DNA from: Phallusia mammillata
Lineage: Eukaryota
Direction: 5' to 3'
Length of the DNA stretch: 64,000 bases
Assembly: GCA_965637545.1 (NCBI GenBank)
Contig: OZ281501.1
Location: 7,192,001-7,256,000 of the forward strand
Shown here: piece after piece, positions 1 to 15,200 of the stretch
Position numbering within the stretch: position 1 is the first letter of the stretch
How the letters are laid out: each line of letters opens with the position of its first letter
The notes under the pieces: generated by a model
The model's database searches: none
What the model was told of the DNA's origin: nothing
Seen by the model: only the letters and a program-made list of their open reading frames with translations
Translations under genes and position numbers: made by a program

Positions 1-3000
1 AGGAAACATACACTGATACACAAAGCGTGGAAGCACGAACACAAACACCAGCAAAAGGGGCAACGTCCATGGAAACGCAAACGTATGAGAAAACTTATCA
101 GACGACTCAAACAGATGCACCGTCCAGAAGAGATGCCAAACTTACCCAAACGCAGTTTACTGCTACAAAGGTATCACAGACTTTAGAGAAAGCGAAAACC
201 GGGCGCGAAATAGATACACAGACCAGTTTTGGTGAGAACAAGGCTTCTGTATTTGCGGAAAAACCTTCTACACAAAAACGGCAACCGGAACAAAAATTTA
301 AATCGCCCGAAAAGAAATTGCAGACTGTCAAAGTTGTTGAGGTCACATCGACTGAACTTCCAAAATTTGTGACTGTTTCGGGTGAAACAGCAAAGAAACA
401 AGACAAAGGTCCTGAAGAAACCCGGGCGTTGACACATACTATGGAAGCTGCAGAAACCCAAACTCAAAAACAGGCGCTGCTAAGTGCGCAGATGATGCAA
501 GAGGAATTGAAACAACAGAAACAGACATCTGGACCGGAAAAGGTTTCTCAAATTCAAGTTACTGAGGTTACCAAAAAGAAGTCTTTCCGAAAAGACGGTA
601 GCAAGACTTTTGCTCTCCAGGAAACAATTGCTACACAAAAGGTGTGGAATCCAATTACACGAGAGTTTCAGGAGGTATCGGTCGAACAGAGCGAAATTTC
701 TAAAGCCCCACAAGGTGTCCATCCAACTGAAAATAAAGTTTCACGAAAGTCTCAGGAACGCAAAGAGGAACTGCAGCCTGATTCTGGTGCCATTCAGCCG
801 ATCGAAGTAGTTCGTGATGTGCCTTACAGAGCCGAGAACCTTGAAGTTGCCCATAAGCAACATTCTGTCAGCGTAAAGTCCGATGATCGGACGATAAAAG
901 TTACGGAAACGATAACGGATACTACGAAACGTGTGTGGAACCCTAAAACGCGACGCTTTGACGAAATTCGTACCATAGAGGTATTGAAAGATGACTCCAA
1001 AATCAACGAACCGCAATTGGAAAATATTAGTCAGAAGACGAAAATTGAAGAAAAACAAGTGACACCATCTGACCGCAAAGATGAAACAATTGTCACTGAA
1101 AAAATGCCTCCGGTAGTATTGCCGGCCAAACAACTCGAGATTCAAAAGACTAAACTTGCTTCAGACGAACAAATTGATACGGACCACACCAAAAAAGCTG
1201 TTACGGAAAAGAAAGAAGTTAAGAAGACCAAACGGGTTTGGAATGCTCGAACTCGGAGGTTTGACGAAGTTGTGATTGAAGAATCAACACACGTTGTGAC
1301 CGAACCTGAAGTTGTTGTCAAGAAAAAAGCTCCCAAGAAAGATGAAACTAAGGCTCCAACGATCACCACCGAACCTGTTATTGAAGCTCACAAACGCGTT
1401 TCGGAGTCAGACGAAAAGGAAAAGAAAACTACCCAGAAGCTGAAGGATATTTCTAAACTGCCTCAGCTTACAAAGGCCCTAGAAGAAGAAATTACACTTC
1501 AACCTAAGAAAGACACTCCAAAAACAGCAACACAAACAACGATTAAAGCTGTAACTGAAGATGTTGTAAAGCCAAGATCACGAGACGAAACTCCAGTTGC
1601 GGATGACAAACCTGTACAACCCATTGCGGACACACCAAAGGTTTTAATTAAAACCGATTTGCAGAAAGAACCGGTATCAATGCCTACTAAACCTGATAGC
1701 GATCAAAAACGTGTTATCAAGGAAGTGGTTGTAGCAAAAGGAAAATCAACTGAAGTGCAGAAAAAGAACAAGACGAAAATGCCGGAATTGACACAAGCAC
1801 TTGCCAAGGAAATAGAAACTACGAAAGCTGTTCAAAGCAAGACTACCAAAGAAAAATCGAAGGTAGTTGAAGATGCGATTCTGCCACAATCATACAAAAC
1901 AGTTGTGGAACCACAGGAGGTTCGATTAAACGTGGAACCAAAACCAGAAGTCCATGAACCTAAAACAAAGTCAGAAGCCAAGAAACCTGGAGCAAAACTA
2001 GAAGTCAAGACACCCGAGACAAAACCCGAAGCAAAGAAACCAAAAACAAAACCAGAAGTCCAGAAGACTGAAAGAAAACCAGAAGCCACGAAACCTAAAT
2101 CAAAACCAGAAGCTATCATTGAAGATGTTATAAAACCAAAAGAACAACCAAAGCAAGTCAAAAAACCAGATCTTGCAAAATTGCCCACACTTACCAAAGC
2201 TCTTGAAACAGAAATTGTAACCCCAGCGGTAACAAAATCAACCAAACATGCGAAAGAGTTACAAAAGAAGGTTGTACAAGAAGAGGAAGTTCAGGCAAGT
2301 AAACGTCAAACATCGACTGAGTCCACAGGGGAGCAGGTGTCTGATGTATCTTTGATACAACAGTCCAAGGTCGACAAAACCAGAGTTTTCTCAGAACATG
2401 ATGAGACCTTCTCTGAGCAATCGACTGTAGAGAAGAAAGAAGTGAAGAAAACAAAACGAATTTGGAACGCACGAACTCGTCGGTTTGACGAAGTAACAAT
2501 TGAAGAAACAAAGCAAATCACAGCCGAACCAAAGGTTGTTATGAAGAAAAATATAAAGAAAGATCAAACTAAGACTAAAGACATCTCATCGACTGTTGAA
2601 GAATCTGTCATCCAACCCAAGAAACATATCCCTGATTCACAACAAGCTAAAGATGTCCCGGCTAAAAAGCGAGACTTGTCTAAATTGCCCGATCTTTCAA
2701 AGGCACTTGAGCAAGAAATTACCACGGTGTCAAAAAGCAAAAGTCAAAAGCCGGACTTGGGTATAATCGAAGAGGTTGTACAACCTAAAACTCGCAAAGA
2801 TCTCGAAGTTTCAGAGAAAATGCCAAGCATGGAATTGGAGCAGAAAACACCCACTGTTCCAGATGTAGAAAAGGTCGTTAAGTCGAAATCGCATGATGTC
2901 AAAGACAAACCAGGGGTTGAAAATAAGAAACCACTGCTGGAGACAAAGTTGCAGGCCAAAGCTCCAGAACCAAAACCTGATGTGGTGGTTGAAGAGGTTG

Positions 3001-6000
3001 TTACACCAAAAGGAAAAACAGTAAAGGCGATTAAAACGGATGAAGCAAAAATGCCGGAACCTACTAAAGCTCTTGCTGCGGAAATAAAACCTATGAAATC
3101 CGTTACCAAATCTAAAACTAAGGTTGTTGCTAAGACCAAGGTTGCTGAGCAAGAGATCAAACCAACATCCACGAAAACAGTTGTGGAAATACGGGACACT
3201 GAAGTGACGAACCAAACGGAAACTAAATTCAAAGCTAAAGCGGAAACCAAGAAACCTACGACGGCTGTTGAAGACGAAATCAAACCTAAAATGCAGGTTA
3301 AACGCGGAAAGCAACCAGATACAACCAAGCTACCCGACCTTGCCAAAGCCTTAGAAACACAGATGAAAATTGTGCCAAAATCCAAACCAGTAACAAAAGT
3401 TGAGAAAAAAGTGGTACAAGAGGAGGTGATACAGTCTAAACAGAGACTTGTGGCTGAATCGGATAAGGACATCGAACCTATACCAACATCGGCTGTGGAA
3501 AGTGTGCAAGAAGTTACACATCCGACGAAGGTTGATACGACCAGAGTAACAGTTGAACAGACTGATGTAACATCATCCGAAAAGACTGCAACGGTAATTA
3601 GTATTCAACAAATTACTGAAGTCTCAAAGAAAACTAGAAGAGTCTGGAACCCCAAAACTCGACAGTTTGACGAGATTGTTATTGAAGAGGCAAAGGAGCT
3701 GGTGAAAAAGCCCCAAGAGCCGACGAAAAAGACTTTAACCAAGAAAAAATCTAAGGAATTGGTACAACAAACTGCTACTGAAACAGTTGAAGTAGAATCG
3801 TCTGTAAAATCATCTTTCTATGTCCAAAAAGAAATAAGTGAGACCACAAAACCCAAAGTTGAAAAGAAAGCTCCAACACCAACGGTGACACAGAAAGAAC
3901 AACCGACTGATGACAAAAAACCGGTTGTACAAACACAAGACGAAGTTAAAGACACAAAACAAAAAGAAAAGACACCTGCAAAAGAAACCGCGCAAACTGA
4001 AGTAACTCAAGAGACGAGAAATACTAAGCTGGTATGGAATCCCAAAACTCGAAAGTTAGACGAAGTGGTTACAGAGGAATCTATTCGAAAAACGAAACAG
4101 CCAACAATAGAAACTCACGAACAACCAAAGCCTCAAGGCGAAGAAGTCAAACGAAAAACTGACGTCTCAGAAGAAATTCCTGCAGTCGACAAGCCAACTG
4201 TAACTGATACGTTGGTTTCCTCGACACCTGGTGAAACTAAAGTAAAATTGACAAAAGAGGTTTCAGAAAGTTTTGAAACCACTACGATAGTAGATGGTGT
4301 TGTAAAAACGGAGGGTGCTGAAAAGAAAACGAAAATGGTTTGGAACCCCAAAACACGGCAATTTGATGTAAGCACCGTTGAAACTACGCTTGAAGAAACA
4401 CCGATGGTTTCTCCAAAGAAAAAAGTCTCTGAAGTATCCAAGCACGCTGAGGTCGTGACTTTGAAACCCATGCAATCTTCCAAGGAGCTTCGAGAAGTTT
4501 CCATTGACCAAAAGCTACAAGAAAGAAGGGAAAGCGTAAAGGACGCCACGCTGTTTGCACAGAAGTTACCTCGGGAGTTGCAAAAGTCAGTTAAAATGAC
4601 TGAAATAACGGAAACTAAGAAAACGAAAAGGACATGGAATCCGAAAACTAAAAAATTCGACGAAATCGTAATTGAAGAATCTACTCATACCACAAAGCAA
4701 CCGGCTGATAAACGCCAGCCTGCTTTATTGAAAACTGAAGACTCTAAAACGCCACCGGCCCAACCACTAGCCCCCGAAATTGGAGCGCAACCAGCTATCA
4801 AACAAACTACGAAACAGTCAGTTATAGACAAACCTGAAGAACAGGTTCAACCGTCTCATTTGCAAACAGACGGTGTTGTCGAGGATACTGTTGCAATGAC
4901 CGGGCATACGGCAAAAGCAGCCAAAAAGGATAAGACGAAAATGCCGGAACTTACCAAAGCACTTGCTGCTGAAATGCAACCAACAAAGAGTGTTGCTACA
5001 CCGAAAACATCCAAGAAAAAGGCTAAAGCGGTCGACGAGGATGTTATTAAACCTGAAAGGCAAAAGATAACTGTTGAACCACAAGATTTGTCATCGCTCG
5101 ACAAACCAATGCAGCAAACTTTAACAGTGGTGGATGAATCTAAAAAATCTAAAACCACAACGCGAAAGTCGAAAATGGTTCGGAAATTTGATGAAATCGA
5201 AACCGAAATTGAGATAAAGCTAGAAGTTTCTCCATTGGACAAAGATACAAAGGAGAAACCGAAAGCTGTTACCGAAGTTTCTATCCAAGAAATCAAGATG
5301 ACTTCCAGCAAAGACCAGCAGGATGTCACTGATGGTATCAAACCTCTAGAACTGGAAGTTTCGCCAGTTTTGCCACTGACGAAAGTCGAAGCAAAAGAGC
5401 CTAAAAAAACTGTAAAATCAAAAACAACTTTTCAACAAGAGACAAATGAATCATTTGAAACGACGAGCGTGGTTGATGGTGTTACAAAGACTGAGTCGAC
5501 TGAAAAGAAAGCGAAAATGGTTTGGAATCCAAAAACTCGCAAATTCGATGAGATGGTGTCCGAAACGAAAATTTCCTCAAAGGTGCCGAGTAAGAAAAAG
5601 ATACCGATGGAAGAACCTACTCAAATCTCAGGACAACCTACTGTTTCTAAAGCTTCTGTAACTAGAGAACAACCAGTTCCAGAAAAACCTAAAGAAACAC
5701 CGGGAAAGAATGTCGAAGTTCAGACACAAGAAAAAGGAAAAGCTCTTTTGCACACAGATGGTGTTGTTGAAGAAGTTGTTGAAATAACCGGGCAAACACT
5801 TAAAGCACCCAAAAAGGATACGGCTAAAATACCGGAACTCTCCAAAGCACTTGCTGCAGAAATGCAACCAACACAGGCTCTTGCTAAACCAAAAACACCA
5901 AAGAAAAAAGGCAAGGCGGTGACTGAGGATGAAATTAAACCTGAAACACAAATAAATACCAGTGAACTACAAGCTCTTTCCTCGCTCGATAAACAACCTC

Positions 6001-9000
6001 AACCAATTGAAACAGTTGTGGCTGAATCTAAAAAGTCTGAAACTACAACGCGAAAGTCGAAAATGGTTTGGAACCCCACAACTCGGAAATTTGATGAAAT
6101 CGAAACCGAAATTGAGACAAAGCAAGAAGTGCTCCCAGTGGAGAAAACCAAGAAAGAGAAACCAAAAGCTGCTGATGTGATACCCGTTGATAATACTGAA
6201 CATCAAAAAGCTATAACCGAAGTTTCAATCCAAGAAACCGACATTACGGTCAGCGAAAAGCAGCAGCAAGTTGCTGACGTTATTAAACCTCTTAAACAGG
6301 AAGTTTTACCAGCTTTGCCACAGACGAAAATCAAATTTAAGGTTCCCGAAAAATCTGTTGAGTCAAAAACAACCATTCAACAGGAGACAAAGGAAACATT
6401 TGAAACGACGAGCGTTGTTGATGGTGTTACAAAGACTGAGTCGATTGAAATGAAAGCGAAAATGGTATGGAATCCAAAAACTCGCAAATTCGAGGAGGTG
6501 GTGTCAGAAACGAAAGTTACTTCAAAGGTTCCGAGCAAGGAAAAGGTCGTGATGGAAGAACCTACTCACCCCACTACACAACCGACAGTTAAACCTCAGC
6601 AGGCTTCTTTGAAATCCGAAAAGGCTGAAACGCCGACGACTCAGTCTAAAATTTCCGGTACCGCAGACCAGTCAACTGTGAAGAAAACTACAGAAGAACC
6701 AGTTCCAGAAAAAACGAAAACAATGCCGGAAAAGAAGATCAAAGTTCCACCACAAGATAAGGTTAAAGCTACACATTTGCACACAGACGGTGTTGTCGAG
6801 GAGGTTGTTAAAATGACGGGACAAACGGTTAAAGTACCACAAAAGGATCAGACTAAAATGCCGGAACTCTCCAAAGCACTTGCTGCAGAAATGCAACTAA
6901 CAAAGGCTCTTGCTAAACCAAAAACACCCAAGAAAAAAGCCAAAGCGGTTACTGAGGATGAAATTAAACCTGAAACACAACTAAAGACTGTTGAACCACC
7001 AGATTTTTCATCACTCGACAAACCACCTCAACCTCCGACACCAGCATTGCCACCAACGCAATTAGAAGTAAAGAAACCTGAAAAAAATGTAAAGTCAAAA
7101 ACTACTTTTCAACAAGAGACAAAGGAAACATTTGAAACGACCAGCGTTGTTGATGGCGTTACAAAGACTGAGTCGATTGAAAAGAAAGCGAAAATGGTTT
7201 GGAATCCAAAAACTCGCAAATTCGATGAGGTGGTGTCCGAAACGAAAATTTCCTCTAAGGTGCCGAGCAAGGAAAAGGTCGTGATGGAAGAACCTACTCA
7301 CCCCACTACACAACCGACAGTTAAACCTCAGCAGGGTTCTCTGAAATCCGAAGAAACTGAAACATCGGTTAAGTCTAAAGCTCCTGTTACTGAAGAACAG
7401 GAAACTGTGCAACAAACTAGAGAACCACAAGTTCCAGAAAAATCTAAAGCCATGCCGGAAAAGAAGATTGAAGTTCAAGGACAAGAAAAGGTTAAAGCTG
7501 CTCCTTTGCTTACAGACGGGGTTGCTGAGGAGATTATTGAAATGGCCGGGCAAACAGTGAAAGCACCCAAGCAGGACAAAACCAAAATGCCGGAACTCTC
7601 CAAAGCACTTGCTGCCGAAATGCAACTAACAAAGGCTCTTGCTAAACCAAAAACACCAAAGAAAAAAGCCAAAGCGGTGACTGGGGATGAAATTAAACCT
7701 GAAACAGAACTGAGGACTGTTGAACCACAAGATCTTTCATCACTCGACAAACCAGCTCAACCTCCTATACCAGCTTTGCCACCAACGCAATTAGAAGTAA
7801 AGAAACCTGAAAAAAATGTAAAGTCAAAAACAACTTTTCAACAAGAGACAAAGGAAACACTGGAAACGACGAGCGTTATTGATGGCGTTACAAAGACTGA
7901 GTCGATTGAAAAGAAAGCGAAAATGATCTGGAATCCAAAAACTCGCAAATTCGATGAGGTGGTGTCCGAGACGAAAATTTCCTCCAAGGTGCCGAGCAAG
8001 GATAAGGTCGTGATGGAAGAACCTACTCACCCCACTACACAACCGACAGTAAAACCTCAACAGGCTTCTCTAAAATCCGAAGAAGCTGAAACATCGGTTA
8101 AGTCTAAAGCTCCTGTTACTGAAGAACAGGCAACTGTGCAACAAACTAGAGAACCACAAGTTCCAGAAAAATCTAAAGCCATGCCGGAAAAGAAGATTGA
8201 AGTTCAACCACAAGACAAAATTAAAGCTGCTCCTTTACATACAGACGGGGTTGCTGAGCACATTATTGAAATAACCGGGCAAACAGTGAAAGCACCCAAA
8301 CAGGACAAAACTAAAATGCCAGAACTCACCAAAGCACCTGCTGCAGAAATGCAACCAACAAAGACTGTTGCTAAACCAAAAACGCCAAAGAAAAAAGTCA
8401 AAGCAGTGACTGAGGATGAAATTAAACCTGAAACGCAATTAAAGATCGTTGAACCACAAGATCTTTCAGCGTTAGAGAAACAACCTCAACCTCCTACACC
8501 AGCTTTGTCACCAACACAATTAGAAGTAAAGAAACCTAAAAAAACTGTAAAGTCAAAAACAATTTTTCAACAAGAGACCGAGGAAACATTTGAAACGACG
8601 AGCGTTGTTGATGGTGTTACAAAGACTGAGACGATTGAAAAGAAAGCGAAAATGGTATGGAATCCAAAAACTCGCAAATTCGATGAGGTGGTGTCAGAAA
8701 CGAAAGTTACTTCAAAGACACCAAGTAAGGAAAAGGTCGTGATGGAAGAACCTACTCACCCCACTACACAACCGACAGTTAAACCTCAGCAGGGTTCTCT
8801 GAAATCCTTAGAAGCTGAAACATCAATTAAATCTAAAGCTCATGTTACTGAAGAACAGGCAACTGTGCAACAAACTAGAGAACCACAAGTTCCAGAAAAA
8901 TCAAAGGCAATGCCGGGAAAGAAGATCGAAGTTCAAGGACAAGAAAAGGTTAAAGCTGCTCCTTTGCATACAGACGGGTTTGCTGAGGAGATTATTAAAA

Positions 9001-12000
9001 TAACCGGGCAAACAGTGAAAGCACCCAAACAGGACAAAACCAAAATGCCGGAACTCACCAAAGCACTTGCTGCAGAAATGCAACCAACAAAAGCTGTTGC
9101 TAAACCAAAATCACCGAAGAAAAAAGCCAAAGCGGTGACTGAGGATGAAATTAAACCTGAAACACAACTAAAGACTGTTGAACCACAAGATCTTTCATCA
9201 CTCGATGAACCACCTCAACCACTTGAAACAATTGTGACTGAATCTAAAAAATCTGAAACCACAACGCGAAAGTCGAAAATGGTTTGGAACCCCAAAACTC
9301 GGAAGTTTGATGAAATCGAAACCGAAATTGAGACAAAGCAAGAAGTGCTTCCAATGGAGAAAGCCAAGAAAGAGAAACCTAAAGATGCTGACGTGATAAC
9401 CGGTCATGATGCTGAACGTCAAACAGTTGAGACCGACGTTTCCACCCAGAAAACCGAGATGACCCCTGTCAAAAAGCATCATGATCTTGTTGATGTTGAT
9501 AAACCTACAAAACTGAAAGTTCCGACCGATTCAATAGAGGCGCAAGTCGCAGTAAAGTCCCCTGAAAAATCTGGTGAAACAAAAACAACCATTCAACGTA
9601 CGACGAAGGAAACCATTGAAACTACCAGCGTTGTTGATGGTATTATGAAATCTGAGTCGACTGAAAAGAAAGCGAAAATGGTTTGGAATCCTAAAACTCG
9701 CCAGTTCGATGAGGTGGTGTCAGAAACGAAAGTTACTTCAAAGACACCAAGTAAGGAAAAGGAGAAAACTCATCCGTTGGAATACAAATACGCTAAAGTT
9801 ATTCCACTTGAAAATGTCGAAGAACCGAAAAACATTCCAGAAGTTTCTATGGAGCAACAGCTCCGCGAACGAAGGGAGAGTGTAAAGGATTCATCACTGC
9901 TGACAACCAAACCAAGACGTGAATTTAAAACAACCACTAAAGTGACTGAGATCAGAGAAACGAAGAAAACCAAAAGGGTTTGGAATCCAAAAACTGGCAA
10001 ATTTGACGAAATCATTATCGAAGAAACGTCTGAAGTGTCTGAACAACCCCTCGTTGAGGCAGCCAAAGTTACTCCTGAGAAAGAATTAAAAGATATGTCT
10101 GACGACAGGAAATCAAAAAAGACATCTTCCAAACCTGACATAACGTTTGACGAACAAACAACCCAAAGTATTGAAACCACTACCACTACCGTTGCTGATA
10201 GGGACGAAGAAATGAAAGACATTCGATCTGTCTCTGAGCCGATCGTGACCTTCATGGATGATGAAAAAGCAGATAAACCAAAAAGCAAAACTGCACTCGA
10301 AACTAAAGGAACAGATATCGCTGTTTCTAGGCCATCTACAAAGTCAAATGTAACGTTTAAACAAGAAACTGCTGAGAATGTAATAACAACGACGGTAGTT
10401 GACGGTGTTGTGAAATCTAAAGAAACAGAAACAACAGCAAAAATGGTCTGGAATCCTAAAACTCGTCAATTTGATGAAACCGTTTCCAAAACTGAGGTCA
10501 CTTTAAAACCAAAGGAAAAACTACCAAAATCGGAATCCAAACACGCCAAAGTTGTTCCTGTAGATAAATTGAAATCAACGAAAAAAATTACTGATATTCC
10601 GATTGATCAGAAGCTAAGTGAAAGACGAGAGGGTATCAAAGACGCAAATCTAATTGAAACGAAACCAGGAAGAAAAGTCGATAAACAACCTAGTAAGCTT
10701 GCTATGAAAACCACACCTGTTAATGTTGAGGAGAAAAAGCAAACAACATTTGTAGCTGAAACCAGTAAAGTTATGGAAGATACCTCGGTGACTAAGACTT
10801 CAACTGAAACGAAGACAAAACTTGACGAAAAGATAACCAAAATGCCCAGTTCTGATGTGACAAAGCCAAAAGTTTCAATGCAGTCTGAAACTATTGAAAC
10901 AACGAGCGTTGCTACAGTGATAGATGGTGTTTCGAAAACTCAGGAATCAGCATCGAAAACAAAACTGGTGTGGAATTCCAAAACACGAAAGTTCGATGAG
11001 ACTGTTGTCAAAGAAGAAAAGGAGTCAAAGTCACAAGTTTCACATACAAAGTCATTGGAACCTGAACCCCAGAAACTTAAGCCAGGATTTTTGGATGAAA
11101 CGACAAAACCTGCTCAATCTGCCAAGGCAAAGATTTCGGAGGAAGAAATTGCATTAACACAACGAGCATTGACCCAAGATTCTGAACCAATTTTTGTCAA
11201 ACAAAAACCTACCGAGCGAAAAGGTGACAAACCATTCAAACCCTCCGAAGAAAAACCAACACTCGAAGAACCAAGCAAAGACAAGACTAGGTCTTCGAGT
11301 AAAGTGGCAAAGCCTGAAACATCAAAACCACAAACACTGGTCACTGAAACGCAACACACTAAAAGCAAGTTTGTATGGAATCCGAAAACCCGAAAATTCG
11401 ATGAAGTCGTCCTGGAAGAGTCAACAGACCACGTTACTACTCGACTTGATAAAACTCCGTTAAAATCGGAAACCGAGCTTTTGGAACCACTGTTCGATTC
11501 TAAAGTGCAACAAATGCCAAAACTGGATGATACTGAACTTCAACAAAAGACATCTAAAACGAAGGCAAAACCAGATATTGCAGAGAAAAAAGGAAAAGAA
11601 TTTTCCAAACCACAAACTTTACCAGAGCCTGTGGACGTACGAGTTGAATCAGTTCGTAATGTTCCGATTACAGTGGAAAGGGTAGCAAAAGACGAAAGCA
11701 CTAGCTTTTCGTTTGGACGCTCCAGCGAGACCACTCGAGTAACTGAGTCTTACGGCGACGGAGTACAGAAAGTACAAACTAGCAAGACAAGCAAACGAGT
11801 CTGGAACTCACAAACTGGTAAATTCGACGAGGTGGAGAGCGAGACAAGGTTTGAGAGTTCTGGTTCCCACAAACAACAGGATGAGCGATCACAGGCTTTT
11901 AAAATTACCATGGAAGAAGACGAGGCGTATAAAATTCGTTCTAAAAGCTCAAAGGCACCTCTTAAGATTGTTACCCAGCCACCACTATTCATAACATACA

Positions 12001-12273
12001 TTCAGAATCAGGAGGTTGATGAAGGATCACCTGCAGTGTTTGGGTGCAAGATAAGCGGTGATCCTCAACCTACCCTTGAGTGGTTTGTTGACGGAGTACA
12101 GATTGAGCCACCTTGTGAGGGATTCACCTTAATTTCCGATGACGATTCGAATGTGTATAACTTGGTCATAGAAAATCCGACCTACACGAAACACAACAAA
12201 GTGATTGTTCGATGTAGAATTGTCAACAAACTCGGTTCAGCTGAGTGCAGCGCCCGTTTAAACATCAAAAAGA
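1..12273 (+). CDS. TTN: Giant (>12.2 kb) exon: about 3,980 aa K/E/T/V/P-rich repetitive elastic region followed by one Ig domain (about 11965-12270)
   Basis: Frame is open from nt 3 (the ORF track start at 27 is only a GTG). Donor A|GTGAGT at 12274 is phase 1 and matches acceptor TAG 12411. The C-terminal PPLFITYIQNQEV...W...C.IVNKLGSAECSARLNI is an I-set Ig. Confidence 0.9.
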
Positions 12274-15200
12274 GTGAGTTTAGACATGACATTTGATCAT
12301 CATTAATCTTAAAGGTTATCCCACTAAAATGTAAAAAAATAATACTGCTATTAGATTACATTTTAATACCGTTGTAGTGTTGAAACTAAATCTAAATTTT
12401 GCATTTGATAGAAAAGGGCAAAGAAAAGAAGCAAAAGCCCAAAGAGGAACCCATTAAGGAAATCGCCCCTAAAATTGTTAAAAAACTCAAAGATCAAAAA
12501 GTTACACTAAAAACTTCGGCTCGTCTCGAATGTCAAATCAGTGGCAAACCTACTCCACGAGTAACTTGGCTGCTTAATGGAAGTCCGATCCGTGATCGCA
12601 GCATTAGAATTGACATCTCAAGAAGTAGTGAAACTGGCAAAGTCCCCATTGTCGTGGCCAGCTTGAGCGTTCACCGGGTGAACAAACAACACACTGGTGT
12701 ATACGAGTGCCAAGCTGTCAATGCCAAAGGCTCGGTTACGACTAGTGCCACATTACAGGCAGTGGAGAAGGACACGCGATCTGTGACAGGTGCCAGTCAC
12801 CGAATGCCTCTGTCACATGGCATGTCATACCATTGACACATGATAAAAACATGTCAACAATATGGTTTGCGGGAGTCGAAAACTTTTACCACATTATGCA
12901 CCATAAAATGTCCAAAACATATTCATTTTTGTGCTTGTAATAGCCAAATCCCAAATAGATCATTTATACAGACTATTTGGAGTATAATATACATTCAATG
13001 AGTTTTTAGGCTTTTGCGGCCCAGCGAAAACAAAATGCAAACCATTATTGTGACAAGGTATAAAAGAAAGTTGTAAACAACAAAATTCACGACATACTGG
13101 ATAAACACCCAAATGTTTAACGGCATGTAAACCCATTACAACATGTCATTTTCATTTTCAGGCTGTACACAGTCAAAGTGGCATCATCTTAACAGCTATT
13201 TCTGTTTCAGGGCTTTTCGAGCAGCCATCACCGGAATCTGAACCGGAGGATATGCAACGACAAGAAGGTACGTGGCATTTTTCATCTCAAACACATCTAC
13301 GATCGTTGTACGTCATTTAAATTGCACGTAGGCACGTTTTGTTTGAAAGTAAGGCAAGGCTACCCCATCATACTGACCTAAAGCCGACGTTCAACAAAAT
13401 TTGCCTACGTGCAATCATCGTTTACGCGTCGGAACGTCTTTTCACCTTATCGCGTTTCACTTTCATTTCACTCTTCTTTCGTGCGTTGTTTCTTGCTGCG
13501 TCCAAATCTTGCGGAACTTTCTCAAACTCTTTGGTTACACAAAAAATTGCCAGAAGGACTTGCATGGCTTTTACCTGGTAAGTGGGGTATCCTTTCCTTT
13601 CTTTAACCTCAGTTTCCAACTGCTGTCTCTAAACTAGGCTAAACTTTGTTTATATTAGCATTCACTGTTTTACTTTACAATGCAATACCAAAAACCAGGC
13701 CTTGGCTGCATAGAACAACTTTACGTGACTTGAACAGGTTTTATGCGGGACGAATGCGATGCCAATAATCGTTTGCACGTTCGAAGCTCAATGACTGGCA
13801 AAGAGTTCACAATTCAGCGCTCTGAAGTCAGTCGCTTGGTTGGTAATTACATCACTCAATCCGATATCGACCCTTCCCTAAACGATACTCCGATATTGTC
13901 GAGGTAAAATACACTTAAATACAGAAATAACTTATCTGATGGTCCACCACAATTAAACGGTTTCTTTTTGCAGAACAAAACAAATCAAAGAGTTGGATGA
14001 TGATTTAATTCGTCCGTCTTTCATACAAAAGCCAAAAATCCAATCAGTCCTTTCTGAAGCCCATGCTCGATTTGATTGTCTGTTTGTTGCCTCGCCTCGC
14101 CCTAGCGTCGTCTGGCTACATTCGGATGCCGAAATCAAGGTATCTATTTCCTCCCCTGAATTTTTCGACCTTGTAATTACATGTATTTCATGTCAATGAT
14201 ATTAGACCTTGTTAATGTCAAGTAGTTATCCCATCAAATAAAGCTGTGCTTTTTCTTCAGGCAAACAGCGCAAAATACAAGACCACGCTCGAGAGGGACA
14301 TGTTTTCCTACCAAGCATTCCTCGAGATCCAGAGCTGCCAATCTAATGATGCGGGAACTTACAAAGTGGTCGTACGCAATCGGGAGGGAGAAGCAACAGC
14401 ATCTGTGCCGTTGGTTGTCACAGAGCGCAGTAACGTTGAATTACCACATACCGATACAACTTCCAGTCACAGAAAATCGGAAATGAAACTGAACCTTGAT
14501 TCAATGACACACCTTGATTCTGGTAACGAGGGTCTGTTACCAAGGACTAACGGCGCCACGCCAAGACAGCCATATTCACCAAGAAAGTATTACGAACGTC
14601 GGGCGAGAGGTGGTCGTACTAGCAGTCTTTCAGAGCCCAGCAGGACTTCCAGTAGCACTCCCTGTGGGCGTACGCACTCGCTAAGCCGGTCGAGTGAGAT
14701 GGAACAGTCGATGTCCTCGATCTCAACCTTATCGTCGCTTTCTGGCGGCAGTCCACCACAGGATAAGCTCTCAATGTTACAAAGCGACCAAGAAGCGTCA
14801 GACCAAGGCGATATTGAGAGCCCAATCACCCACAGTAGCAGGCAGAGCTGCATTAAAACTCAAATATCAAACGAAGGTTTATCAGTGGCATTATTTCGGC
14901 GAGACGACACCGATACGTCGGGAATCGAAACACTGCATTCGTCTCGGACTTCAGTAAAGCGCGATCACAGTGTTTCACCTTTGAAAAACTCTAACCGCGG
15001 CGTCCCACCTGTGGTTATATCTGAACTGCCAGAAAACGTTTCGGTAAACACTGGAGACGCAATTAGCCTGACTTGTAGTGTTTCCGGTCGACCTCGCCCC
15101 AAAGTCTTATGGATGCGTGATGCCGAAGATGTTCGTAACGCGGCCCACTACAGCTTTGAAGAGGCATTGCGCTCTACAGAGGACAAACTAACCTATGACT

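Follow-up and report, generated by a model that had tools for sequence, protein, structure and literature searches.

The stretch of DNA analysed here, referred to as the window, comprises 64,000 nucleotides of the tunicate Phallusia mammillata (GenBank assembly GCA_965637545.1, contig OZ281501.1, positions 7,192,001 to 7,256,000 of the forward strand). Its left end is occupied by a giant open exon of the titin/connectin gene, and this exon carries 21 intact copies of a short tryptophan-centred motif, W-N-P-x-T-R-x-F at its core, that is the subject of this work. The open reading frame (ORF) of the exon lies in frame 3 of the plus strand at 27..12296 and encodes 4089 residues, with no stop codon upstream back to base 3. 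Because the ORF is open to base 1, the giant exon extends past the left edge of the window. A probable donor, GTGAGT at 12274, was placed by sequence reading alone.

The exon consists of a spacer of 3,960 residues rich in K, T, E, V, P, S and Q, followed by a terminal Ig domain. Over the whole exon K accounts for 16 % of residues, T for 13 %, E for 12 %, V for 9.5 % and P for 7.6 %. Downstream, at 14-21 kb, lie Ig exons, and Fn3/Ig arrays follow at 43-60 kb; the orthologous locus of Ciona intestinalis falls within a called product of 25,656 residues. The position of the locus in the titin gene, together with a charged, proline-containing, low-complexity and predicted-disordered sequence, is that of a titin/connectin I-band spring. 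The terminal Ig domain served us both as an anchor for orthology and as a yardstick of divergence. The main features of the exon are as follows.

1..12273, plus strand: giant open exon of the titin/connectin gene, K/T/E/V/P-rich spacer and terminal Ig domain
6207..9257, plus strand: tandem 729-nt (243-aa) super-repeats in direct orientation, with one copy of the motif with a D-G turn in each
11985..12266, plus strand: I-set Ig domain that closes the exon (last 95 residues; Pfam PF07679, E 4e-12)

Copies of the motif in the giant exon

The ORF holds 22 tryptophans, 21 of them within the pattern W-N-[PAS]-x-T-[RGK]-x-[FL] and the remaining one (nt 12081) at the core of the terminal I-set Ig domain. 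An earlier note, written from the letters of the window, had counted 21 intact copies and one internally deleted copy, had assigned every Trp of the repetitive spacer to the motif and had given the copy near 9980 (W at nt 9981) as KRVWNPKTGKFDEI. All of these were recovered in the ORF where the note had placed them, and the 243-aa unit that it described is real, in the form of 729-nt direct repeats between about 6200 and 9300. The extent of the motif required revision: a conserved block does exist, but it is about 20 residues long (-6 to +13 around the W) and not 13. In the Trp-anchored alignment this informative block reads KK(T/A)K(M/R)VWNPKTRKFDE(V/I)VxE. When the residues of the exon are shuffled, 0.0055 matches to W-N-[PAS]-x-T are expected per shuffle against the 21 observed, which excludes a chance origin of the copies. 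The other frames, the opposite strand and the other exons of the window contain zero copies of the motif.

The copies are irregularly spaced, 97-408 aa apart. Nine of the 21 are preceded by a D-G pair at -16/-15, which follows a T/V/E-rich stretch and is listed below as the D-G turn. The youngest copies are located in the 729-nt tandem repeats, and older copies have unrelated flanks. The list also marks the two copies closest to HP7, a designed hairpin peptide to which we return in the last section. All entries are on the plus strand.

627..686, plus strand: copy 1, W 645, the most diverged, IATQKVWNPITREFQEVSVE
918..977, plus strand: copy 2, W 936
1221..1280, plus strand: copy 3, W 1239, P replaced by A
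2445..2504, plus strand: copy 4, W 2463, P replaced by A
3627..3686, plus strand: copy 5, W 3645
4017..4076, plus strand: copy 6, W 4035, F replaced by L
4323..4382, plus strand: copy 7, W 4341, D-G turn at -16/-15
4617..4676, plus strand: copy 8, W 4635, 7/12 identical to HP7
5166..5195, plus strand: deleted copy at aa 1714, KSKMV/RKFDEIETE, W-N-P-x-T lost (5 residues) relative to its paralogues at aa 2015 and 3087
5505..5564, plus strand: copy 9, W 5523, D-G turn
6051..6110, plus strand: copy 10, W 6069
6450..6509, plus strand: copy 11, W 6468, D-G turn, in the 729-nt repeats
7182..7241, plus strand: copy 12, W 7200, D-G turn; used for modelling, as was its 244-aa unit (7020-7751)
7911..7970, plus strand: copy 13, W 7929, D-G turn
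8640..8699, plus strand: copy 14, W 8658, D-G turn
9267..9326, plus strand: copy 15, W 9285
9666..9725, plus strand: copy 16, W 9684, D-G turn
9963..10022, plus strand: copy 17, W 9981, Gly at the turn, 7/12 identical to HP7
10431..10490, plus strand: copy 18, W 10449, D-G turn
10953..11012, plus strand: copy 19, W 10971, P replaced by S, D-G turn
11358..11417, plus strand: copy 20, W 11376
11784..11843, plus strand: copy 21, W 11802, Gly at the turn

Other repeats occur in the same exon. A 27-nt tandem repeat at 1939-2113 (6.5 copies) encodes K-P-E-A/V-K-K-P-K-T and is the most PEVK-like part of the exon. A second recurrent motif, K-[MLI]-P-x-L-[TS]-K-A-L-x-x-E-[IM], occupies 12 sites in 1455-9080 (for example 1776, 4938, 6855, 7584, 8313 and 9042); it is found in old and young repeats alike and is modelled with low confidence by AlphaFold2 (AF2). 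As a co-conserved element it was rejected, since its 12 copies here have no counterpart in Ciona or in the orthologues from ENA assemblies.

Conservation, range and expression

A word search identified three orthologous giant exons in ENA assemblies, P0001 (4181 aa), P0002 (2797 aa) and P0003 (3470 aa), each of which closes with the same Ig domain and carries 10-22 copies of the motif. When the motif is masked, BLASTP of the window exon against these three exons aligns the Ig domain only, at 45-49 % identity, and no 12-mers beyond the motif are common to all four exons. Across 1,525 pairs of copies from different species, the flanks show an identity of about 0.08, as against 0.4-1.0 over -6 to +13. 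Values at single positions are 0.85 (K-3), 1.0 (W), 0.96 (N), 0.97 (F) and 0.82 (E+9); positions 0, +1, +2, +4 and +7 are partly fixed by the search pattern in this comparison and the remaining positions are free. The earlier note had claimed that the motif is conserved despite completely diverged flanks, and these data bear it out, contradicting the possibility that the motif is no better kept between species than its surroundings. A short block conserved across species inside non-conserved disorder is the hallmark of a short linear motif.

Pooling the window with eight other lineages yields 93 distinct 24-mers. The numbers that retain each residue are 92 for W, 91 for N, 89 for F, 82 for K-3, 81 for E+9 and 80 for P. 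In this set D at +8, K at -3 and E at +9 are nearly invariant. The turn position that is Gly in designed hairpins is Arg or Lys in 83 of the 93, and at +4 Thr and Ser alternate with basic residues on either side. The adjoining Ig domain, by comparison, is 39-74 % identical among lineages, 39-48 % between the window and the other lineages (40-48 % for seven carriers) and 41 % between the window and Ciona. By this measure the motif is held under stronger constraint than the neighbouring Ig fold. The Asn, Pro, Arg, Phe, Asp and Glu of the motif are each encoded by two to four codons across copies. Because synonymous codons vary freely within the motif, selection acts at the level of the protein and not of the DNA or RNA.

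To survey other organisms, 1.84 billion representative proteins were screened with a profile built from 65 copies (threshold E 0.001). The screen, similar to one that the earlier note had proposed, gave twelve matches, of which nine (P0001-P0008 and P0012) are carriers of the true motif. All nine are K/T/E-rich, and six end in, or precede, the same Ig domain. Of the other three, one is a bacterial repeat protein and two are WD40 proteins in which the match is confined to T-I-R-V-W-N-x-x-T-G. Two of the carriers are NCBI proteins of Ciona intestinalis, XP_026691853.1 (P0005, 'proteoglycan 4-like') and XP_078489335.1 (P0008, 'uncharacterized'); both names look like annotation artefacts of low complexity, and the label 'proteoglycan 4-like' on a protein that matches the spring can be corrected. 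A marine metatranscriptome (ERR1712168) contributed P0007, an E/K/S-rich fragment of 148 residues with two good copies 86 residues apart and runs of S-K-S-K-S-R. It may derive from a pelagic tunicate, and it documents the motif in environmental RNA.

The Ciona chromosome locus that encodes P0008 (L004) holds at least 29 copies in units of about 114 residues, with D-G at -16/-15 in 28 of 29. Around 6197-6360 of L004 the reading of the array passes from frame 0, which ends at 6360, to frame 1, which begins at 6197; a short intron, an assembly indel or a genuine frameshift could produce this. The last Ciona copy (frame 1, residue 1320; about residue 52 of P0008) reads Y-I-F-N-P-R-T-R-S-F-D-E and is the only copy seen with W replaced by F, a change that fits a requirement for an aromatic residue at the Trp position.

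Altogether the motif array is present in the orthologous exon of at least eight other tunicate lineages, Ciona intestinalis included, with spacers that cannot be aligned. Expansion took place separately in each lineage and produced units of different length, with the same 20 residues kept. On the sequences retrieved the array looks restricted to tunicate titin; lone diverged copies outside tunicates would fall below significance in the profile search. When the exon and four single units were compared with Pfam (E up to 10), the terminal Ig domain was the only match, and the motif profile had zero matches among PDB sequences at the same threshold. A 301-residue piece used in a word search among candidate proteins of 165-525 aa likewise had zero matches, and a feature search of the ESM Atlas gave no usable match. 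A literature search covering Ciona titin PEVK and the strings of the motif returned nothing relevant, one Ciona connectin paper lying outside that scope. As far as these searches reach, the motif is an undescribed component within a known system, the titin spring.

Evidence of expression comes from the contigs of four runs, whose GT..AG joints mark them as RNA-derived. The last 3 kb of the giant exon are covered in patches at a depth of 3-9, compared with 19-56 for the downstream exons, and three of the four runs show no coverage in the intron 12306-13140. The same contigs define small exons at 13209-13265, 13736-13901, 13972-14137 and from 14259, with an alternative donor (13576 to 13737) in two runs. 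Exon 13209-13265 is spliced upstream to two different Ig-like sequences, both absent from the window. Because this exon joins upstream sequences outside the window, we infer that upstream splicing is alternative, that the dominant transcripts in the sampled runs skip the giant exon and that it is included at a low level or in restricted tissues. This suggests that the giant exon is a low-abundance cassette.

Predicted fold and competing explanations

Given a 32-column alignment of the 65 copies, AF2 predicts two strands (7-14 and 19-26) around a P-K-T-R turn, with a mean predicted local distance difference test score (pLDDT) of 89 over residues 11-20 and 67.6 overall. In the 244-residue unit at 7020-7751 it predicts strands at 33-44, 47-62 and 67-81 with pLDDT 84-93, the remainder being below 50, and the three strands are connected by the D-G and P-K-T-R turns. 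The spring with periodic mini-hairpins that the earlier note had imagined is partly supported, by a hairpin predicted both in the peptide and in the 244-aa unit, by likeness to HP7 and by the strand-turn-strand of the WD40 repeats that the profile reached, and is amended in that the sheet is often predicted to be three-stranded. Two stretches, -14 to 0 and +9 to +13, contain no strand breakers (G, N, D or P) in the copies from the window, Ciona and P0001 and only few in those from P0002-P0004. Basic residues mark the strand ahead of the turn and acidic ones the strand that follows; in the register of the model, K-6 would lie opposite E+13, R/M-2 opposite E+9 and W opposite F.

For the nine window copies with D-G and nearly all Ciona copies the hairpin is predicted to be part of a module of about 50 residues that forms a three-stranded sheet. 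Half of the copies in P0001 (for example residues 1040-1095) have E-P at -16/-15, in the register of D-G, with V-D-V before it. A third strand may be more general than the D-G counts suggest. Foldseek with the 32-residue model returned generic hairpins only (best E 3.6), with protein G B1 mutants at the non-significant ranks 21 and 34, and a wide search by VIA-align with the 244-residue model returned generic long sheets (best Z 5.1).

We propose that the motif is a hairpin-shaped, multivalent contact site of the tunicate titin spring that also hides contour length, a proposal to which we give about an even chance. The basic strand K-K-T-K-(R/M)-V-W would pair with the acidic F-D-E-V-V-x-E across a fixed six-residue connection, N-P-K-T-R-K, with Trp facing Phe and the turn stabilised by Asn and Thr/Ser. 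Where the D-G turn is present 16 residues upstream (nine window copies and nearly all Ciona copies), it would join a third strand to the pair. Under load, each folded module would release some 20-50 residues of hidden contour length. The basic loop tip K-T-R-K and the charged faces of at least 21 modules would form a multivalent surface for an acidic sarcomeric partner, for which the thin filament is the obvious candidate; a second possibility is that the basic edge of one module engages the acidic edge of another. With the giant exon acting as a cassette, muscles could add or omit the whole array.

The same block could instead be a linear docking or modification motif that is disordered when free and adopts the hairpin only in a complex, bound by a strand-addition domain or phosphorylated by a basophilic kinase on the Thr/Ser of K-T-R-K. 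Its shortness, its setting within disorder and a conservation far above that of its surroundings are classic marks of such motifs, the exchange of Thr and Ser at +4 between basic residues would suit a kinase site, and the charged surface and the turn Arg are conserved beyond the needs of a fold. High AF2 confidence inside disordered regions, moreover, marks conditionally folded segments. We nevertheless consider this explanation rather unlikely. The pattern aromatic-N-P-x-T-(G/R/K)-K-aromatic, opposite flank charges and the lack of helix and strand breakers are what a self-pairing hairpin requires, the D-G turn and the third strand, kept in register in two distant lineages, suggest a larger folded unit, and no known motif class fits in register by eye. 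Among the classes compared, PP1 RVxF, calmodulin 1-8-14, S100 TRTK-type, WH2 LKKT, EH-domain NPF and AP2 WxxF-acidic motifs have the wrong register or spacing by eye, as does the N-glycosylation sequon, titin being cytosolic besides. The basic stretch does fit the pattern of a KKxKR nuclear-localisation signal, but 21 copies of one in a sarcomeric spring are unattractive. A self-pairing hairpin is favoured over a featureless linear motif because the loop length is fixed, an aromatic pair and a turn with Asn and Thr/Ser are kept, the strand charges are complementary and the third strand is in register in both lineages.

If the fold is real, its role could be purely mechanical, the hairpins or sheets storing hidden length, dissipating energy or preventing collapse and aggregation of the spring with no partner involved. 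A predicted fold within a disordered spring is what this account calls for, and the cross-strand charge pairs K-6/E+13, R-2/E+9 and K-3/D+8 can explain much of the conservation. The chain ends of the three-stranded form would exit at opposite ends of the sheet and load it in shear, a geometry in which single-layer sheets such as SasG G5-E resist force. Selection on the fold alone, however, would allow many more sequences and would favour Gly, Asn or Asp at the turn that Arg and Lys occupy; the motif is better conserved than a folded Ig domain next to it, and two-stranded copies would unzip at trivial force, so that we judge the purely mechanical account quite improbable. Fold stability alone is probably insufficient, and the loop tip probably functions in binding, because Arg/Lys prevails at the turn, K-T-R-K and the surface charges are nearly invariant and the block outlasts the Ig fold. 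That the motif has no special function, being a relic of duplication or a DNA or RNA signal such as a splicing enhancer, is hardly credible. The exon was indeed built by tandem duplications, but the spacers of the duplicated units have diverged beyond recognition within and between species and the motif has been kept, independent expansions with different unit lengths have preserved the same 20 residues, and the scrambled synonymous sites within the motif exclude a nucleotide signal.

Several points weigh against the hairpin-shaped contact site that we prefer. Its fold is a predicted one and its partner putative. AF2 confidence for a short peptide with an alignment of paralogues can mirror a conformation taken up only on binding, or a bias towards hairpins in T/V/K/E sequences. 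A two-stranded hairpin pulled at its ends unzips at very low force and may add next to nothing mechanically; on the three-stranded form, force would act in shear and could meet greater resistance. With Arg at the turn and Phe in place of a second Trp, the hairpin should be less stable than designed peptides, and the irregular spacing of the copies argues against a strict ruler. In the four runs, for which contigs only were used, no contig spans the 3′ junction of the giant exon, and inclusion in mRNA is deduced from coverage.

Titin springs are usually viewed as folded Ig domains joined to disordered segments devoid of features. In the spring described here, by sequence comparison, one very small element within the disorder is more tightly constrained than the adjoining Ig domain. 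This offers a peptide-sized handle on the question of specific structure or binding sites within the disordered parts of such springs. The motif also bears on how contacts between spring and filament tune passive stiffness. In its strongest and more doubtful form, which we advance as a possibility only, the proposal holds that a natural, autonomously folding mini-protein, growing from a 20-residue hairpin to a core-less three-stranded sheet of about 50 residues, is a repeated element of the spring; it would store length and latch onto the thin filament or neighbouring modules through its loop tip, the array being switched by the splicing of one exon. If this were true, it would be the smallest known mechanical domain. 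Ciona, a tractable chordate with a single titin gene, is available for such questions.

Comparison with known systems

The earlier note pointed to the GB1-derived peptide GB1m3; the closest designed peptide is instead HP7, KTWNPATGKWTE (PDB 2EVQ). HP7 is a designed 12-residue beta-hairpin solved by nuclear magnetic resonance (PMC9885153, PMC11013605). The number of identities between it and a window copy is 4-7 of 12 residues, with 6 as the typical value and 7 at nt 4635 and 9981. With HP7 and the GB1m series (NPATGK loop) the motif has in common an aromatic pair around a six-residue N-P-x-T-G-K connection, and AF2 places the turn at the same four residues. The full pattern aromatic-N-P-x-T-G-K-aromatic is found at nt 9981 and, with Ser for Pro, at 11802; the other copies have R or K for G. 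In contrast to the designs the motif is natural and repeated, has Arg/Lys for Gly and Phe for the second Trp, and is set in a giant disordered protein with strands that are longer and oppositely charged. Designed NPxTGK hairpins serve as folding models, and with the motif as their counterpart in nature one can ask whether biology makes use of folds this small.

The WD40 likeness is confined to T-[IL]-R-[VL]-W-[ND]-x-x-T-G, from the end of strand C to the start of strand D, where the two WD40 proteins P0010 and P0011 overlap 12 positions of the profile (8-19). In WD40 blades the stretch T-I-R-V-W-N-x-x-T-G forms a strand-turn-strand. The motif, however, lacks the G-H dipeptide, the 40-residue period, the four-stranded blade and any Pfam match; with a spacing of 97-408 residues, WD40 identity was rejected and the resemblance is one of a local turn, not of homology. 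WW domains are also small three-stranded antiparallel sheets, with a second loop after aromatic-N-x-x-T, and their first loop may be D-G-K, as in FBP28. Unlike them the module has predicted strands of 12-16 residues, no second conserved Trp or terminal Pro, and 17 residues instead of about 8 from D-G to Asn. With one Trp per unit and no PF00397 match at E up to 10 in four units, a WW domain was likewise rejected.

Long, polar, K/T/E/V-rich three-stranded sheets without a hydrophobic core are known from the SasG E/G5 repeats and the central sheet of OspA. Single-layer sheets of this type are mechanically competent when tandemly repeated. The structural match of the module to them is weak (Z 3.6-4.3) and comes without any relation in sequence, and those proteins are extracellular and bacterial.

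A parallel is also drawn with vertebrate PEVK, which is likewise K/E/V/P-rich, lies in I-band titin upstream of the Ig/Fn3 arrays of the A-band, is variably included and presumably acts as an entropic spring. A PEVK segment of the vertebrate type was rejected, since this spring is a single giant exon whose only short-period repeat is the 27-nt (9-residue KPE) array at 1939-2113. Where vertebrate PEVK is assembled from many 28-residue exons, the tunicate spring is one Thr-rich exon of more than 12 kb, without the periodicity of 26-28-residue PPAK repeats or of poly-E motifs. It also carries a conserved, Trp-containing module that vertebrate PEVK lacks.

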